Below are positions 15,223 to 24,739 of a stretch of DNA of 64,000 nt, piece after piece. Source of the DNA: Rebecca billardiae RCC1528 (taxonomy: Eukaryota; Protista; Haptophyta); contig OZ251224.1 of the NCBI GenBank assembly GCA_965240325.2, positions 2,542,001 to 2,606,000 on the forward strand, read 5' to 3'. Numbering within the stretch: the stretch's first letter is position 1; each line of letters opens with the position of its first letter. A model generated the notes under the pieces. It made no database searches, was not told the DNA's origin, and saw nothing but the letters and a program-made list of their open reading frames with translations. The position numbers and the translations under genes were made by a program.

Positions 15223-16506
15223 TCAGCGGTACCGCGGACCTGCGGTGGCGGCAGCCTTGCTGGCAGAGCCTTGGGTGCGGTCGAGCGTGAACGAGTAGAG
15301 AAAGGCGCCGCTGATGGCGAGGGTCGCGCCGAGCGCGCCCGCCGGCGTCACGGGCGTGTGGAACGCGAGGACGGAGCCCACGATCACGATCACGCGCTTG
15401 AGTGTGTTGGCGACCGCGTACGTGAGCGGCGAGCAGAGCTCGAGCACGCAGAAGGCGAGCTCGTTGGAGAGGTAGTTGACGAAGCCGGTGAGGGCGAGCA
15501 GCGCGACGAGGCCGAAGCCGCCCGTGGCGGCGGCGGTGGCCGCCGCCCCGTCGCTCTCGCGGTTCTCGCGCCACCACGCCAGGATGGGCGCCCCCTCGAT
15601 CGCGAGCGCCGTCGGCACGAGCAGCGCGAACGAGAGGATGCACAGCGAGGCGAACAGGTTGCGCGCGCCGAGCTGCTGGAAGGGCGGGCGCGCCATCAGC
15701 TGCTTCGCGGCGATGGAGTAGAGCGCGAACGCGTTCATCGACACGCCGCACGCGCCGAGCGTGAACCAGCTGAACTCGAGCTCGTGCACGGTCGCCAGAG
15801 CCACGCCGCCGACCACCGGGACGAGAGTGGCGTACACGGCGGGCGCAAACGTCTGCCTCGCAAAGACGGCGAGGCAGAGGCTCGCAAAGAGGGTCTCGGT
15901 CGTCTTCACGACGTTGGTGAACGCGACCGAGCCGTACGCCGGCGCGGCTGTCGCCGCCGTGTGCCCGATCGCGAGCAGCGCCGCCGCGGGCAGCATCTGG
16001 CGCAAGGCGCCTGCGGGCAGGGTCGGCCGCACTCGCAGCGGGCGAGTTCGCCACCGCTTTGCCGCCGCGTCGTACGTCGGCCACGGGCTCCACAGGGCGA
16101 GCACGTACAAGATGCCCGCGCCGAGCTGGATGGCGCCGAAGGTGAAGGGGAACGGCCACAAGCGCAGCGCCGCCTTGTTCGCCACCGAGTAAACGAGGTT
16201 GCACGCGTACCACGCCGCGAGCAGCATGACAATGCGAGCCAAGCGCGCAACGCGCGCAGGCGACGGCGATGCCGAGCACTCCTCCGCGGCGGCGGTGGCT
16301 TTGGCCGCGCTGCCAGGCATGCTGCCAGGTAGACGCGTGTGCGCGTTCGCGAGATCCTTCGGCGCGTCCGCGCTGGCGGCATCGACCGTTCGTGGCGTGC
16401 GCCGCATCATCTTGTTGTTGCCGTCAGCACCGCGGCCCCCACCGAGCAGGGGTGAGCCCACGGATGGGCGGTCCATCACGGTGGTCGTGAGCGCGACAGA
16501 TCGCAT
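15223..16506 (-). CDS. Triose-phosphate translocator / DMT-superfamily sugar-phosphate or nucleotide-sugar transporter
   Basis: WYACNLVYSVANK, GSVAFTNVVKTTE, CSPLTYAVANTLKRVIVI, GAFLYS; about 9-10 hydrophobic helices. Exact start uncertain. Confidence 0.9.
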   Translation of the reverse strand: MRSVALTTTVMDRPSVGSPLLGGGRGADGNNKMMRRTPRTVDAASADAPKDLANAHTRLPGSMPGSAAKATAAAEECSASPSPARVARLARIVMLLAAWYACNLVYSVANKAALRLWPFPFTFGAIQLGAGILYVLALWSPWPTYDAAAKRWRTRPLRVRPTLPAGALRQMLPAAALLAIGHTAATAAPAYGSVAFTNVVKTTETLFASLCLAVFARQTFAPAVYATLVPVVGGVALATVHELEFSWFTLGACGVSMNAFALYSIAAKQLMARPPFQQLGARNLFASLCILSFALLVPTALAIEGAPILAWWRENRESDGAAATAAATGGFGLVALLALTGFVNYLSNELAFCVLELCSPLTYAVANTLKRVIVIVGSVLAFHTPVTPAGALGATLAISGAFLYSFTLDRTQGSASKAAATAGPRYR

Positions 16507-17919: not shown

Positions 17920-19869
17920 ATGTTGTCGGCCGCTGGCGCCGTCCACCTGAAGCGGCGCCCAGCGGCGCGCGTGCTGCTGCTGTGGCTCGCCGAGTTGAGC
18001 CGGCCTGTGCGTGGCCTGGCGTCTGGCGCGCCGTCCCCGCCGCCGCGCGTCGCGACGTCCGCGGTCTCGGCGCTGCCGATGCCGATGCAAGCGCTCGCGG
18101 CAGAGCTTCGCGATGCGCCCGACTCAAAGGCTCGCTCTGTCAAGCTCGTGCAGCTCGGCGCGGGCTCGGCGCGCTGTGGCACATCGCCACCACCCGATTC
18201 GGTGCGTGTGCGCGGCTGCACTGCCGTCGTGCACGTGCGCGCAGCCGTGCGCGACGACAGCACGCTCGAGCTGGGCGGCTCGGCTGACGCGGCGCTGTCG
18301 CGCGGCCTGCTCTCGCTTGTCGTCGACGGGCTGGCGGGCGTGAGCGCATCGGAGGCGCTCAAGCTGCGCGCGCGAGATATTTGCGCCGCTGCCCAGCTCG
18401 AGGGCGCGCTTGCGCCGTCGCGCATCAACGGGCTCGGCTCGATCCTCGACGCGGTGAGCACGCAGGTGTCGACTGCGCTCGCGGCACGCGACGCCGGCGG
18501 CCAGCCAGCGACCGTCGGCGCATCGCCGCCCGAGCCGGCCGTGTCGCTCGCCGCATCGACGGCCGGTCTCCCGCACGCGCCGGTTTCCGCGACCGCGCCG
18601 GCTGCGTCAGGCGCGCCGGCCGCCGAGGCCGCCGCGCCCACCGGAAGACGCGACGCGGTCGAGGCGGCGGCGCGCGGGCAGCACTGGACGGCCGCGCACC
18701 GCGGCGAGAGCGTGGCCCTCCTGTGCTCGGGGGGCGTGGACTCGTCCGTGGCGCTGCACCTGCTGCAGGCCGCCGGGTACGACGTGCACGCCTACTACCT
18801 CCGCGTCTGGCTCGCCGACGAGCTCGCCTCCCTCTCCGACTGCCCATGGGAGGAGGACTGGGCGTTCGCCTCGGCGGTGTGTTCCAAGCTGGACGTGCCG
18901 TTGCAGGCGGTGTCCGTGCAGGAGGAGTACTGGGAGCGCGTGGTGGAGTACCTCGTCGACGAGGCGCGGTCCGGGCGCACGCCGAACCCCGACGTGATGT
19001 GCAACTCGCGCATCAAGTTCGGCGTCTTCCTCGACTCGATCGGCAACTCATACGCGCGCGTCGCCAGCGGGCACTACGCCCGGCTGCTCCGAGCGGACGA
19101 AGTGGTGGGGGGTGCGATTGGCGGGGTGGACGGCGGCGTGGGGCTGAGCGGCGTGGCGGGGCTGCCCGGGTCGGGCGAGGTGCGGCTCAGCCGCGCGGCC
19201 GACCGGCACAAGGACCAGTCCTACTTCCTCTCCTCCCTCTCGCAGGCGCAGCTGTCGAGGCTCGACTTCCCGCTGGGGGGGCTCACCAAGCCCGAGGTGC
19301 GAGGCCTCGCGTCCGAGCTCGGGCTGGCCACGTCCGGCCGGAAGGACTCGCAGGGCGTGTGCTTCCTCGGGCGGCTCCACTTCGACGAGTTCCTCAAGCA
19401 CCACCTCGGCGAGCGCCCGGGCCCGCTCGTCGAGTGGGAGTCCGGCGCGCCGATCGGCCAGCACCGCGGCATCTGGTTCCACACAGTCGGGCAGCGGCGC
19501 GGCATCGTGCCCGGGCTGCGCAACGAGCACGCGGCCCGAGGGCCGTGGTACGTCGTCGGCAAGGACGTGGAGGGCGACGTGGTGTACGTCAGCCGCGAGT
19601 ACGCCCGCGTGACGGAGGAGCGCTCGGCGATGGAGGTGCACGGTCTCTCGTGGACCACCGGTGCACCCCCGCTGCCCGCAGGCGCAGAGGTGCGCCTGGG
19701 CGTGCAGGTGCGACACGGTGGCGGGGCGCAGCCGGCGACGGTGGAGCTCGGTGCCGATGGCCGACACGCGCGCGTGCGCTTCGACGAGCCGGACAAGGGT
19801 CTCGCGCCCGGCCAATTCGCCGCCTTCTACGACGGTGACGTTTGCCTTGGCGCTGGTGCTATCGGCTGA
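17920..19869 (+). CDS. mnmA: SufE-domain / tRNA 2-thiouridylase (MnmA) fusion with organellar targeting peptide
   Basis: SufE: RVRGCTAVVHV...ADAALSRGLLSL...LAPSRINGL. MnmA: SGGVDSSVA, TPNPDVMCN, SGHYAR, KDQSYFL, KDSQGVCF, HTVGQRRG, APGQFAAFY. Confidence 0.92.
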   Translation: MLSAAGAVHLKRRPAARVLLLWLAELSRPVRGLASGAPSPPPRVATSAVSALPMPMQALAAELRDAPDSKARSVKLVQLGAGSARCGTSPPPDSVRVRGCTAVVHVRAAVRDDSTLELGGSADAALSRGLLSLVVDGLAGVSASEALKLRARDICAAAQLEGALAPSRINGLGSILDAVSTQVSTALAARDAGGQPATVGASPPEPAVSLAASTAGLPHAPVSATAPAASGAPAAEAAAPTGRRDAVEAAARGQHWTAAHRGESVALLCSGGVDSSVALHLLQAAGYDVHAYYLRVWLADELASLSDCPWEEDWAFASAVCSKLDVPLQAVSVQEEYWERVVEYLVDEARSGRTPNPDVMCNSRIKFGVFLDSIGNSYARVASGHYARLLRADEVVGGAIGGVDGGVGLSGVAGLPGSGEVRLSRAADRHKDQSYFLSSLSQAQLSRLDFPLGGLTKPEVRGLASELGLATSGRKDSQGVCFLGRLHFDEFLKHHLGERPGPLVEWESGAPIGQHRGIWFHTVGQRRGIVPGLRNEHAARGPWYVVGKDVEGDVVYVSREYARVTEERSAMEVHGLSWTTGAPPLPAGAEVRLGVQVRHGGGAQPATVELGADGRHARVRFDEPDKGLAPGQFAAFYDGDVCLGAGAIG

Positions 19870-20449
19870 CGCCACCCTGACTCCTGAGTCGTCCCGAGGC
19901 CGTGAGGGCTTGAATGGTCGGCAACTGCACCGACGGTGCCGGTGGACTTGTAGTAACGCTCCATCGTGGCGGCGGCTGATCAGCATGGCCGCCTGGCACT
20001 CCCCACGGCCCGGTGCGCGTGCCGCTTGGGCGGCGGGTCAGGGCGCAGGATGGCGGCTGTGGCGGTGGCGGCAGGTTGGGAGTGGTGATCGCTCGTGCGC
20101 GCAACGCGGACGCGCCTTCGCCGCCATTCCTCCGCGCCATTCTCGCCAGCTTGGCCGGCGCGGGTGCCGGCCAGGTGCTCGGCAGTGCCGCTCGGCGGCC
20201 TCCGCGGCCGCGCGCGAGCGAGTGACGGGTGTCGAGGTCCGCCCGGGCGGGGCGAGAGGGTTCATTGGCCCACTCTGCGCCCACCCACGCGGTATGAGCC
20301 GATACGCTGCAACGGTTGGCGCCCGAGGGCCCGCCAAGGGGTCGCGTGCACTCTGGCAAGTGGATGGAACGCGGGGGTGTTTCCCCAAGCGGGCTCGCGT
20401 CGACGGTCGAGCCCGCCGGCGGCCGTTCAGGGCTTTCAGCTTCGGGCTG

Positions 20450-23400
20450 ATGAGAGAGCGGTGCATTGATTCCATGAACAGCCTGATGGCGGCAGAGACG
20501 CAGGTAGCGCGCGAGGCGGTGCCCCTCCTCCGCCGCGCGCTGGCTGGGCTCGAGAAGGCGCTCGGCGAGGAGCACGCGCACACGCTCACCGCCGTGTTCC
20601 AGCTGGCCGTGACGCTGCACAAGCTCGACCGCCACGACGAGGCGGTGCCCCTCTTCCGCCGCGCGCTGGCTGGGTTCGAGAAGGCGCTCGGCGAGGAGCA
20701 CGCGCACACGCTCACCGCCGTGTACCAGCTGGCCGTGACGCTGCACAAGCTCGACCGCCACGACGAGGCGGTGCCCCTCTGCCGCCGCGCGCTGGCTGGG
20801 TTCGAGAAGGCGCTCGGCGAGGAGCACGCGCACACGCTCACCGCCGTGCTCGGGCTGGCCGTGACGCTGGACTCGCTCGGCCACCACGACGAGGCGGTGC
20901 CCCTCCTCCGCCGCGCGCTGGCTGGGTCCGAGAAGGCGCTCGGCGAGGAGCATGTGCTGACGCTCACCGCCGTGTACCAGCTGGCCGTGACGCTGCACAA
21001 GCTCGACCGCCACGACGAGGCGGTGCCCCTCTGCCGCCGCGCGCTGGCTGGGTACGAGAAGGCGCTCGGCGAGGAGCACGCGCAGACGCTCAATGCCGTG
21101 TTCCAGCTGGCCGTGACGCTGGGCAAGCTCGGCCGCCACGACGAGGCGGTGCCCCTCTGCCGCCGCGCGTTGGCTGGGAAAGAGAAGGCGCTCGGCAAGG
21201 AGCACGCGCACACGCTCAATGCCGTGTTCCAGCTGGCCGTGACGCTGGGCAAGCTCGGCCGCCACGACGAGGCGGTGCCCCTCCTCCGCCGCGCGCTGGC
21301 TGGGCTCGAGAAGGCGCTCGGCGAGGAGCACGCGCAGACGCTCACCGCCGTGTACCAGCTGGCCGTGACGCTGAAGAAGCTCGACCGCCCCGACGACGAC
21401 GACGAGGTGAATGCGCTCGAGAGCCGGGTGAGTGGTGTGGCGTTGAAGGTCATGCCGTTGATAAGTGTCTTCCTCCGCTTCAGATACAACGCCATTCTTC
21501 TTTTCTGGACTGTGCTATACGCCAGTTTCTGGATCTTTCCTCCACATGCGTCCATCGTGCGCACTCATTTCGGCATCATCCCCATCATCCGTCTCGTTCT
21601 CCTTTCCGTGCTGCGCCATCTCCTCCTGCCGATGGCACTGGTGCTCGTGCTCATCCTGAGCGCGTTCGGCGATAATGGAGAACGCCGCCGCCTCTGGCGC
21701 GGCTTCGCTGATGCGCGCTCAGCAGAGCCTCGGGAGTGCTCGCCCGCGGCAGCAGCGCACGCCCCAGCGTCTGCACGGCCGCAGTCCTCCGCTGTGCATG
21801 CTCCCGGTGCACCTGCGACTGCCTGTCCCACGCTGCCTGTGCTCGCCTCATCGAGCGTGCGGGGTTCCGCCACCACTGGAGGTCAGCATGCGGCCGCAAG
21901 CATTGCGCCAGGCGCGGCGCGCGTGTTGCACGCGCTCGCGCGCGCGGACCGCAGCGCGGCGTCGGTGCGCGCGGCGCTCGGAGGAGCGCGGCTCTCGCCA
22001 TCCGACCCGATGCGCGTGCTTGCAGAGGGCGTACTCGCGCAGCTCGAGGCCGACGCAGCGGCACGTGCAGCTCAGGAGGCGGCGCGCGCGATGCTGCATG
22101 ATGTGCTCGAATGCGCAGCTGGCGGCGGCGCAGGCGGTGCAGTGCGCGCGCTCGAGCGTGCACTGGGCACAGCGCGACAGGCGGGGCTCGGCGCCCTCCC
22201 TGCGGACACTGCACTGCTCGCACGTGCCGACGCGGCTCTTCGGCGCGCTCTGCTTGTGCAGCGGCTCGAGCAGCCCATGACGAGTGTGGAGTGGCCAACG
22301 CAGCCAGCGAGGCTTGACGGAGGCTCGTCGAACGCGGTCGTGCTCAAGGCGCGGTGGCAAGGCGTCGACGTTGCAGCCAAGCGCTTCAAGAAGGGCGAGC
22401 GCGACAGCGAGCTGCTGCGCGAGGTGCGCGCGCACCATGCGATGCGTCACGAGCACGTGCTCACGCTGTACGGCCTGGTGCACGATGACCCTTACGACTA
22501 CTACCTGCTGCTGGAGTACGCATCGCGCGGTAGCCTGCGGCAGGTGCTCGCAGCAGACCGCGCACTGGGCGAGCTTGAGCGGCACAAGCTGCTCTGCGGT
22601 GTGGTGCTCGGCATGCGTGCGCTGCACCCGGTCATCTTGCACCACGACCTCAAGCCGGAGAACGTGCTCGTCTTCAACCACTACGTCGCCAAGATTGCGG
22701 ACTTTGGGTTGGCAACAGTCGACGGCTCGTCCACCGCGCACGAGCGACGCGGCGCGGGGACGGACGCGTATGCGGCGCCCGAGACTTTCGATGACGCGGG
22801 GTACACGGCTGCATGCGACGTCTACAGCTTCGGAGTCCTCGCGTGGGAGATCGCCACAGGCCGCGTGGCGTGGCAGGACTCGCAGACGGGCCGCCCGCTC
22901 CCACGACGCGTCGTGATGCGCCGCGTCGACCGCGGCGTCAGGCCAGACGAGGTGGAGGTGGCGGCGGACGCAGCGGGCGCCCTCTCGCGCCGAGCGTGGG
23001 CGCAGGAGCCGTCGGAGCGTCCCTCGTTCGAGGCCATCTGGGAAGAGCTCGAGTCGAACCTGCACGCGCGCGCCGAGCTGCGAGCGCTCGATGCCGACAG
23101 CCTGCGAACGCTCATCAAGGCGGTCGGCCCGGACCCCGCCAACCTCGGCGCGTGGTACGAGCCGGTGGGCGGCTCGGTGGACTCCCTCCGAGCACGCCTG
23201 GCCGACGCGTTGCCGGCGGAGCCAGTGCCCTCCCTGGAGGCGGGCGTGCGCTTGGCAGCGGCGAAGAAGCTCGAGCGCGTGCTCACGGATTGCCACGGGC
23301 ACGCGCGCTTTGCGCCGCAGCTCATGGCGCAGTACGGCGCCGACCTGAACGCCCTGTGGTTCTCCGTGCTCCCCGAGTACTGCCCGCAGCCAGCGGCGCC

Positions 23401-24739
23401 AGCCGAGCGCGGCCGCACGCGACTGCTCGTCATTGCTGCGGGCATCGGCCTCAAGGCCGATCCTGGCGGCAACATGGGCGTGCTGCAGGCCGCGGGCTTT
23501 GAGCTCAAGGTGACCGGCTTCGAGCCAGATGTCGACACGGGTCTCGCAGCGGTCGAGGCGGCCATCCGCTCCTTTGAGCCGCACGTGCTCCTCTGCGCAT
23601 CGAAGGGCGGCGCGTACGCGCTCCGGCTATGGCGTCGCGGGCACAGCATTCCGACGGTGATGATCAACGCCCACCCGAGCTTGTCAGCCATCCCTGACAA
23701 AGAGGCGGTACTCGTCCTTGCGCACGGGTCGAATGACAGCCAATTTCCGCGCGCGCGTGCGGATCTCGAGGACGTGATCCGCACCGCCGGTGCGAACCGC
23801 GCGTTCCTCTACTACTCGGGCGACTCTGGGGTGATGCCGGGCGGACACGGCCACACGCGGCGCGGCGACGGGCACGACCGTGCGAGCACGCTGCACGAGC
23901 TGGGGGTGCCGTACAGCCTGCTGCAGTACGACTGCCTGCCGCGGCTGGTGGACGCTGCCGCTGATCCCCAGCGCTGCCCCGAGGCGCACGTCGTGCGCTC
24001 GTGGCGACGCTTCCTGTCCGCCTCGCGGCGGGCAGCCGAAGAGCAGCTCGGCTCGGGCCCGGCGCAGCTGCGCCGCCGTTGGGAGACGGACGGCCGCTCC
24101 GCCCAGCGCACGCGTCGCGTCGCGCCGGGCTCGGCTGAGTACCTCGCCGTGCGCGACATCTTCCTCGCCGAGCCCGAGGCGCCGCGACACTACGGCGGAC
24201 GCGCACGCCCGTCCGCGCACTGGGGCCAGCGTGAGGTGCTCGCAGTGGATCGGATCGAGAACCACGCGCAGCAGGAGGGGGCGCGCGCGCAGCACAGCGG
24301 CATCGCCGACAGCCTCGCCGCGCAAGGCCTGGCCGCGCACCTTGATGCAGCCGACCGAGCGCGTTGGCTCTTCCACGGCAGCCCGCGCACGGAAGACCTC
24401 GAATCGATCACCGATGACCCCGTGAACGGCTTCTCCGCCACGCTCGCAGGTGGGACTGCTGGATCGCTGTGGGGTCCGTACCTCTACTTCGCGCGGGACG
24501 CGCAGTATTGCCTCGACCACGGCTTTTGCTGCACACTGCCGGACGGATCGTACCAGCTGCTGCTCTGCCTGGTGGAGACGGGCATGCCCTGCCTTGGCGA
24601 TGCTGGCATGCGCCTGATGCCAAAGCGGCAGAGCAATCACCGATACACATCCGCGGTGGACAGCCTCTCGTGCCCTGAGCTCTTTTGCGTGGCCGACGGC
24701 AAGGCTGTGTACCCCGCGTACCGCATCACCTTCCGCTGA
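20450..24739 (+). CDS. Multidomain TPR(x7) - hydrophobic segment - Ser/Thr kinase - alpha/beta-hydrolase - PARP/mono-ART protein
   Basis: 42-aa kinesin-light-chain-type TPRs (20513-21394). Hydrophobic stretch about 21450-21670. Kinase VAAK, HHDLKPENVL, DFG, APE, DVYSFG (about 22310-23060). Hydrolase LCASKGG...HGSND...GDGH. PARP LFHGS...YLYFARDAQY...VDSLSCPELF...VYPAYRITF. Start may be 20450 or 20474. Confidence 0.85.
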   Translation: MRERCIDSMNSLMAAETQVAREAVPLLRRALAGLEKALGEEHAHTLTAVFQLAVTLHKLDRHDEAVPLFRRALAGFEKALGEEHAHTLTAVYQLAVTLHKLDRHDEAVPLCRRALAGFEKALGEEHAHTLTAVLGLAVTLDSLGHHDEAVPLLRRALAGSEKALGEEHVLTLTAVYQLAVTLHKLDRHDEAVPLCRRALAGYEKALGEEHAQTLNAVFQLAVTLGKLGRHDEAVPLCRRALAGKEKALGKEHAHTLNAVFQLAVTLGKLGRHDEAVPLLRRALAGLEKALGEEHAQTLTAVYQLAVTLKKLDRPDDDDEVNALESRVSGVALKVMPLISVFLRFRYNAILLFWTVLYASFWIFPPHASIVRTHFGIIPIIRLVLLSVLRHLLLPMALVLVLILSAFGDNGERRRLWRGFADARSAEPRECSPAAAAHAPASARPQSSAVHAPGAPATACPTLPVLASSSVRGSATTGGQHAAASIAPGAARVLHALARADRSAASVRAALGGARLSPSDPMRVLAEGVLAQLEADAAARAAQEAARAMLHDVLECAAGGGAGGAVRALERALGTARQAGLGALPADTALLARADAALRRALLVQRLEQPMTSVEWPTQPARLDGGSSNAVVLKARWQGVDVAAKRFKKGERDSELLREVRAHHAMRHEHVLTLYGLVHDDPYDYYLLLEYASRGSLRQVLAADRALGELERHKLLCGVVLGMRALHPVILHHDLKPENVLVFNHYVAKIADFGLATVDGSSTAHERRGAGTDAYAAPETFDDAGYTAACDVYSFGVLAWEIATGRVAWQDSQTGRPLPRRVVMRRVDRGVRPDEVEVAADAAGALSRRAWAQEPSERPSFEAIWEELESNLHARAELRALDADSLRTLIKAVGPDPANLGAWYEPVGGSVDSLRARLADALPAEPVPSLEAGVRLAAAKKLERVLTDCHGHARFAPQLMAQYGADLNALWFSVLPEYCPQPAAPAERGRTRLLVIAAGIGLKADPGGNMGVLQAAGFELKVTGFEPDVDTGLAAVEAAIRSFEPHVLLCASKGGAYALRLWRRGHSIPTVMINAHPSLSAIPDKEAVLVLAHGSNDSQFPRARADLEDVIRTAGANRAFLYYSGDSGVMPGGHGHTRRGDGHDRASTLHELGVPYSLLQYDCLPRLVDAAADPQRCPEAHVVRSWRRFLSASRRAAEEQLGSGPAQLRRRWETDGRSAQRTRRVAPGSAEYLAVRDIFLAEPEAPRHYGGRARPSAHWGQREVLAVDRIENHAQQEGARAQHSGIADSLAAQGLAAHLDAADRARWLFHGSPRTEDLESITDDPVNGFSATLAGGTAGSLWGPYLYFARDAQYCLDHGFCCTLPDGSYQLLLCLVETGMPCLGDAGMRLMPKRQSNHRYTSAVDSLSCPELFCVADGKAVYPAYRITFR
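20513..21394 (+). repeat. Seven tandem 126-bp TPR-coding units
   Basis: Units begin gaggcggtgcccctc at 20513, 20639, 20765, 20891, 21017, 21143 and 21269. Confidence 0.95.

Follow-up and report, generated by a model that had tools for sequence, protein, structure and literature searches.

A SufE domain joined to a putatively plastid-targeted MnmA in the haptophyte Rebecca billardiae and in other algae with red-lineage plastids

Accurate reading of the codons for Lys, Glu and Gln requires a 2-thiouridine at position 34 of tRNA (s2U34). Here we describe a gene of the haptophyte Rebecca billardiae RCC1528 in which a SufE domain and MnmA, the tRNA 2-thiouridine(34) synthase, are encoded as one chain, hereafter SufE-MnmA. 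It lies in a 64,000-nucleotide stretch of contig OZ251224.1 (assembly GCA_965240325.2, positions 2,542,001 to 2,606,000, forward strand), hereafter the window, from whose first letter all nucleotide positions below are counted. The closest described proteins are those of apicomplexan parasites. In Toxoplasma, TGGT1_309110 (TgMnmA) combines a single Pfam SufE domain with tRNA_Me_trans domains and is localised to the apicoplast (Yang et al. 2022, PMC9420914); the same study lists another protein, TGGT1_294380, in which PP-loop and aminotransferase class-V domains occur together. In Plasmodium falciparum, the 421-residue N-terminal extension of PfMnmA (PF3D7_1019800) holds a ‘SufE-like structural domain’, and Swift et al. 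(2023, PMC10219651), who compared the corresponding N-terminal parts of MnmA from Babesia, Theileria, Toxoplasma and Eimeria, already proposed a relay in which sulfur passes from SufS through the SufE-like domain to MnmA. In the same work, maintenance of the apicoplast depended on SufS and MnmA but not on stand-alone SufE, SufC or SufD. The domain goes unmentioned in a later paper by that group.

Like TgMnmA and PfMnmA, the algal protein is nucleus-encoded in an organism with a red-derived plastid, and consists of a leader, a SufE or SufE-like domain and a D-type MnmA, in that order. The apicomplexan proteins are far longer, with the 421-residue extension in PfMnmA and about 1600 residues in TgMnmA, whereas the algal protein is compact. 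The SufE part of the Plasmodium protein is diverged and was recognised structurally, whereas the algal SufE domain passes the Pfam threshold and has all the key residues. This likeness between algal and apicomplexan proteins is drawn from the published architecture and an Atlas feature score of 0.96.

In Escherichia coli, s2U34 is likewise made by a D-type MnmA with a PP-loop, a DxxC motif and a second cysteine, supplied by persulfide carriers along the route IscS-TusA-TusBCD-TusE-MnmA. As opposed to the five separate Tus proteins and the type-I desulfurase IscS of that bacterium (per PMC10219651), the alga has one attached SufE domain and a presumed type-II SufS. The YrvO-MnmA system of Bacillus subtilis resembles the algal one in having a short path, free of Tus proteins, between a SufS-like desulfurase and MnmA, but there the transfer is direct, the desulfurase gene lies beside mnmA and no SufE takes part, whereas in the alga an acceptor domain is interposed and the desulfurase is neither fused nor adjacent. 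Plant SUFE1 (SufE-BolA) and SUFE3 (SufE-NadA) also carry an N-terminal SufE joined to a client or partner domain, in the plastid. Their partners are BolA and quinolinate synthase rather than a tRNA thiolase, and SUFE3 is essentially a green-lineage protein, whereas SufE-MnmA was found here in the red lineage. The SufE domain of SUFE3 has been suggested to serve the [4Fe-4S] cluster of the fused NadA, in a 2021 survey covering the SUF components of 25 algae; among SufE proteins that survey reports only SUFE1 and SUFE3, and it never mentions tRNA.

A first-pass annotation of this DNA named only SufE-BolA and SufE-NadA, as the SufE fusions described in plants, and the novelty which this implied is not upheld, since the Toxoplasma (2022) and Plasmodium (2023) SufE-MnmA proteins precede it. 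Its proviso that the fusion might already be characterised holds for the architecture, which is published for apicomplexans, but not for the function of the SufE domain, which was never assayed in the papers found. The fusion type and the relay idea are thus already published for Apicomplexa; what is new here is the breadth of the fusion over red algae and algae with red-derived plastids, and the invariance of the residues equivalent to C51, D74 and R119 of E. coli SufE. Full-text literature searches, with incomplete coverage, found no paper on an algal SufE-MnmA, which is not proof of absence.

The Rebecca SufE-MnmA coding sequence is one unbroken open reading frame (ORF) of 649 residues that runs from ATG to TGA without a stop between the two halves, so that, as the ORF reads, no intron is required to join them. 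The ATG is preceded by in-frame stops, 26-27 codons away, and the G+C content around the gene is about 70%, like that of most of the window. Along the gene, the features are as follows, all on the + strand, with supporting evidence in brackets; AF2 denotes AlphaFold2, pLDDT its predicted local distance difference test score, and A1 and A2 are alignments of relatives.

17920-19869, + strand: complete SufE-MnmA coding sequence (single ORF; Pfam and NCBIfam domains; about 100 orthologues of the same architecture)
17920-18057, + strand: putative N-terminal presequence, residues 1-46 (basic stretch KRRPAAR, hydrophobic core VLLLWLA, Ala/Ser/Pro/Arg-rich stretch)
18058-18504, + strand: SufE domain, residues 47-195 (Pfam SufE, profile match to 1MZG, AF2, Foldseek)
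18217-18219, + strand: codon of Cys100, equivalent of the persulfide-acceptor Cys51 of E. coli SufE (1MZG alignments; invariant in A1 and A2)
18286-18288, + strand: codon of Asp123, equivalent of E. coli SufE D74, which contacts SufS helix alpha16 (1MZG alignment; invariant in 58 fusions)
18421-18423, + strand: codon of Arg168, equivalent of E. coli SufE R119, required for SufS/SufE turnover (1MZG alignment; invariant in 58 fusions)
18505-18696, + strand: Ala/Pro-rich flexible linker, residues 196-259 (23 Ala and 9 Pro in 64 residues; pLDDT below 50 at residues 200-259)
18697-19866, + strand: MnmA, tRNA 2-thiouridine(34) synthase, three domains, residues 260-649 (Pfam, NCBIfam and PDB matches, AF2)
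18727-18744, + strand: PP-loop SGGVDS, residues 270-275, for ATP binding and tRNA adenylation (MnmA alignment)
18991-19002, + strand: D358-V-M-C361, D-type DxxC motif (GRTPNPDVMCN block identical to 9hlv and 2hma; D358 and C361 invariant)
19093-19179, + strand: Gly-rich insertion in the catalytic domain, residues 392-420 (splits the TIGR00420 and PDB matches in two)
19360-19362, + strand: codon of Cys481 in DSQGVCF, second catalytic Cys, equivalent of E. coli C199 (aligned with KDSTGICF; at least 90% of the family)

The first-pass annotation had read this ORF as a SufE-MnmA fusion with a complete SufE domain after a leader, the Cys of an RVRGC motif at 18217, an Ala/Pro linker and intact SGGVDS, DxxC and DSQGVC motifs. 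All of this is borne out: both domains score above their family thresholds within the single frame, the Cys at 18217 is exactly residue 100, the linker has the composition given above, and the three MnmA motifs are exact at the listed positions. The ORF contains no Met between residues 57 and 359, and hence an MnmA that includes the PP-loop cannot start at an ATG inside the ORF. The AF2 model of the full-length chain has two confident domains, a disordered leader (residues 1-43) and a disordered linker (residues 200-259), with a predicted template modelling score of 0.62. With this score and a disordered linker, no fixed geometry between the domains is predicted, which fits a tethered, mobile SufE domain.

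The fusion is shared widely. Among the best 120 database matches to the query protein, which are the relatives considered throughout, about 100 have the SufE and MnmA domains in the same order; SufE-MnmA is a conserved family rather than an isolated case. Four of the fusions (P0016, P0096, P0100 and P0102) are MMETSP transcript assemblies marked complete, so that fused messenger RNAs exist in relatives. A gene-model artefact is rejected on these fused transcripts together with the continuous ORF and the lack of an internal ATG, and the fusion of SufE and MnmA in one chain is confirmed. The named carriers include haptophytes (Pavlovales sp. CCMP2436, Prymnesium), red algae (Rhodosorus, Porphyridium, Purpureofilum), the brown alga Ectocarpus and the diatoms Thalassiosira and Seminavis; every one is a red alga or belongs to a lineage with a red-derived plastid, and all bear plastids. 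In an Atlas feature search, a diatom cluster in which 97% of members have SufE stands level, at 0.96, with an apicomplexan MnmA cluster. A quick maximum-likelihood tree of MnmA places the query in a starred clade of 5 rows with Pavlovales sp. CCMP2436, nested in a starred clade of 13 rows that also includes Prymnesium and Chrysotila. By this placement, the high-GC source of the gene is most likely a pavlovophyte. Two relatives within fusion clades, P0118 and P0026, looked like non-fusion proteins and proved to be truncated models, as longer members of their clusters (P0133 and P0131) carry SufE. The sole green-algal MnmA recovered, that of Dolichomastix tenuilepis (P0105), lacks SufE, with MnmA beginning at residue 50, and falls outside all the fusion proteins in the tree; this single sequence is thin evidence for absence of the fusion from the green lineage.

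The N-terminal half is a genuine but diverged SufE-type domain. Pfam SufE (PF02657, InterPro IPR003808) matches residues 62-180 with an E-value of 1.8e-16; the score of 60.5 bits exceeds the gathering score of 27, and the match spans 117 of the 121 profile positions. As a single query, the domain has only modest matches among solved SufE chains (E 3e-4), and a profile built from 48 fusion SufE domains (A1) finds E. coli SufE, 1MZG, along nearly all of its length with an E-value of 2e-25. With that profile, SufE entries outrank CsdE entries, the exception being a weak match to the Thermus SufE 1wlo. The AF2 model of the domain has a mean pLDDT of 97.8, and its best Foldseek matches are Salmonella SufE 3g0m (TM-score 0.82) and E. 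coli SufE 1mzg (0.79-0.81), followed by CsdE and then by the more distant IscU fold; on this model, the SufE-type fold is confirmed. The cut-offs that define equivalogs of bacterial stand-alone SufE and CsdE are not reached (NF006792, 35 bits against 160; TIGR03391, 19.5 against 136), and the domain is not an equivalog of either.

In alignments to 1MZG, query residues C100, G120, D123, G129 and R168 correspond to C51, G71, D74, G80 and R119 of E. coli SufE, and across 58 full-length fusions exactly these five are the invariant columns of the SufE part. The SufE cysteine is kept in 99 of the 99 relatives aligned at that column, the remaining 21 of the 120 being gapped there, and its conservation is far beyond chance. 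A 2024 study of the SufS-SufE complex (PMC11408855) gives C51 and R119 as the two residues that all SufE-like folds conserve, places D74 in contact with helix alpha16 of SufS, and shows that the R119A variant still binds SufS and accepts persulfide, with turnover abolished. Keeping the equivalents of C51, D74 and R119, the algal domain would retain the residues for SufS docking, sulfur uptake and release.

The C-terminal half is, by its motifs, a complete D-type enzyme. It contains Pfam tRNA_Me_trans (PF03054, residues 264-484, E 1.3e-64), the PRC-barrel tRNA_Me_trans_M (PF20259, residues 490-559) and the C-terminal barrel tRNA_Me_trans_C (PF20258, residues 570-648), and passes both NCBIfam MnmA equivalogs (TIGR00420, 341 bits against a cut-off of 237; NF001138, 327 against 284). 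The solved MnmA chains 9hlv, 2hma and 2der match at E ~1e-76, with the KDSxGxCF block conserved between them and the query, and AF2 is confident throughout the domain. In the family alignment, residues G271, G272, V273, D274 and S275 of the PP-loop are invariant and S270 is present in at least 90% of members. We take D358 and C361 of the DxxC motif to be the equivalents of D99 and C102 of E. coli MnmA. The Gly-rich insertion, of about 29 residues (ADEVVGGAIGGVDGGVGLSGVAGLPGSGE), is absent from the bacterial MnmA structures and has low pLDDT at residues 399-407; it is probably a lineage-specific surface loop.

The leader, which was judged by eye from sequence, is a putative bipartite plastid-targeting presequence. 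Its pLDDT is below 50 at residues 1-43, with a hydrophobic peak at residues 14-19, and in both the query and its nearest orthologues an LL(V/L)(C/W)L core comes after a basic stretch. Orthologues from stramenopiles begin with clear signal-peptide-like hydrophobic stretches and red-algal orthologues with simple transit-like leaders, hydroxylated and basic; this shift from simple to signal-peptide-like accords with the red-algal and the red-derived plastids of the named carriers. The linker that follows the SufE domain varies in length among orthologues between 1 and 135 residues (median 26), and measures about 64-67 residues in the query. It is about 8-11 residues long in the red algae Purpureofilum and Rhodosorus, 34 in Porphyridium and 135 in Ectocarpus; the orthologues compared were P0033, P0035, P0036, P0037, P0048 and P0049 against P0003 and P0041. 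Where the linker is short, the two domains should be held in a fixed geometry.

Taken together, these features make it fairly probable that the protein is a plastid-targeted D-type MnmA with a built-in SufE that takes persulfide from plastid SufS and so replaces the Tus relay. The leader would direct import of the nucleus-encoded protein into the plastid. There, the SufE domain would dock on the plastid type-II desulfurase SufS/NFS2, the presumed partner, and receive a persulfide on Cys100, with Asp123 and Arg168 serving in docking and release like D74 and R119 of E. coli SufE. The Ala/Pro tether could then swing the SufE domain to the MnmA site, where the sulfur would pass to Cys481 and Cys361, and the PP-loop would adenylate U34 of its likely substrates, plastid tRNA-Lys, -Glu and -Gln, so that sulfur replaces O2. 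The attached SufE would in this way stand in for the TusA-TusBCD-TusE relay of E. coli. The requirements in P. falciparum, where SufS and MnmA are needed and stand-alone SufE and SufC/SufD are not, are what a built-in SufE would predict. The first-pass annotation had put forward such an organellar SufS-SufE-MnmA relay without Tus proteins; with the equivalents of C51, D74 and R119 invariant, it stands as the best-supported mechanism, but it is not new, having been proposed for apicomplexans.

Several observations weigh against this mechanism. The hydrophobic core of the query leader is short, and targeting was judged by eye. The linkers of 1-11 residues in some orthologues mean that a long swinging tether is no general requirement. 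Swift et al. themselves favour direct transfer from SufS to MnmA, as in B. subtilis YrvO-MnmA, and in their hands the SufE-less MnmA of B. subtilis took the place of PfMnmA in one attempt out of four (PMC10219651). In the literature searched, we found no study of the function of the SufE domain, or of the biochemistry, of any SufE-MnmA fusion.

Among the other explanations, the one that survives best, although unlikely, is that the SufE domain works with SufS to give sulfide for a labile [4Fe-4S] cluster at the MnmA site, bound by one Asp and two Cys, and that the cluster rather than a persulfide inserts the sulfur. Reports cited in a 2026 review describe such a labile cluster in E. coli D-type MnmA, with two Cys and one Asp as ligands and with activity depending on it, and the family conserves the candidate ligands D358, C361 and C481. 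Arabidopsis SufE3 offers a precedent, its SufE domain having been suggested to work exclusively for the [4Fe-4S] cluster that the fused NadA carries. The requirement of D-type MnmA for a cluster is, however, disputed in a critical review. Moreover, deletion of SufC or SufD in P. falciparum spares the apicoplast, whereas deletion of MnmA or SufS does not, which indicates that MnmA there is independent of clusters made by SufBCD; assembly of a cluster in situ is unaffected by this argument.

Less probable again is that the SufE domain only recruits SufS and activates it allosterically, the persulfide passing from the SufS cysteine directly to MnmA and skipping Cys100. SufE binding is known to raise SufS activity, and the direct transfer that Swift et al. 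see as the closest analogy, like the ability of B. subtilis MnmA alone to complement, would agree with such a role (PMC10219651). A pure docking module would not need an acceptor cysteine, however, and the presence of Cys100 in all 99 aligned relatives speaks against it, as does the invariance across 58 fusions of the R119 equivalent, which acts in release after transfer. Finally, it is very unlikely that the protein acts outside the plastid, in mitochondria or the cytosol, or that faulty annotation or assembly has joined two separate proteins: the leader is indeed short and no textbook signal peptide, but apicomplexan SufE-MnmA is experimentally apicoplast-localised, plastids are present in every named carrier, the unbroken ORF offers no internal ATG ahead of the PP-loop, and the same fusion recurs in about 100 independent genomes or transcriptomes among the best 120 relatives.

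The analysis also bore on where the two halves came from. The SufE domain alone gave no match at E <= 1e-3 as a word-search query, and the 48-sequence profile retrieved four short proteins only, at least two of them fragments of fusions, and no close stand-alone SufE. An Atlas feature search with the SufE domain put a cyanobacterial SufE cluster on top at 0.88, which is a lead and not evidence. Bacterial loci were taken from a pattern-seeded scan, with peptide words of the query as patterns and one genome per species; in none of 80 such loci did a hidden Markov model of the fusion SufE detect a SufE ORF closer than about 3 kb to mnmA. A long ORF upstream of mnmA at one of them, L010, showed no additional Pfam domain.

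The MnmA half appears to have a distinct affinity. The 14 top bacterial loci (L001-L014) score 323-393 bits and belong to Babeliales/Dependentiae, Peregrinibacteria, Acidobacteriota and one 2-kb ‘Chondromyces’ contig, as opposed to about 180-195 bits for cyanobacteria. Identity in MnmA is likewise 41-50% to metagenome-assembled genomes of Peregrinibacteria, Dependentiae/Babeliales and Acidobacteriota and about 35-38% to cyanobacteria. In the MnmA tree, the algal proteins, including the green P0105, group with the top bacterial set behind a branch with support of 100, far from the six cyanobacteria used for comparison (L044, L051, L065, L067, L069 and L072). An approximately unbiased (AU) test rejects a clade of algae plus cyanobacteria with p 2.6e-9, for a clade that was named post hoc, in a bacterial sample biased towards the query and with several compositionally skewed rows. 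This placement suggests either a non-cyanobacterial source of the plastid MnmA or a transfer from eukaryotes to bacteria. A broader reading, which we hold tentatively and rate a little below an even chance, is that the fusion arose once, as an ancient invention of the red plastid lineage that spread from red algae to haptophytes, ochrophytes and apicomplexans, with none in the green lineage, and that it forms a general and overlooked sulfur route for plastid tRNA thiolation, the MnmA half being perhaps of the non-cyanobacterial Peregrinibacteria/Dependentiae/Acidobacteriota type.

The genes around SufE-MnmA are of other kinds. On the opposite strand, a 427-residue ORF at 15223-16506 (-) belongs to the triose-phosphate/phosphate translocator family (Pfam TPT, E 4e-67) and has a long N-terminal extension. 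On the 3′ side, a very long ORF at 19661-24739 (+) contains near-identical TPR-like repeats and, after them, kinase-like and other domains, and in the same region another ORF runs on the opposite strand (19859-21564, -).

SufE-MnmA fills a gap in the 2021 survey of algal SUF components, in which SUFE1 and SUFE3 were the only SufE proteins, and its presence in the red lineage and absence from one green alga make it an additional marker of plastid ancestry. If the single red-lineage origin is correct, it would explain why stand-alone SufE is dispensable for the Plasmodium apicoplast, and if the MnmA half is non-cyanobacterial, the plastid s2U pathway would be a chimera. Apicomplexan parasites that lose SufS or their plastid MnmA lose the organelle with it. 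The algal proteins, which are compact and retain all the key SufE residues, are far easier to handle than the long, diverged parasite proteins, and so could be used to test the path of sulfur from SufS to MnmA and to decide between a persulfide and an iron-sulfur cluster in D-type MnmA.

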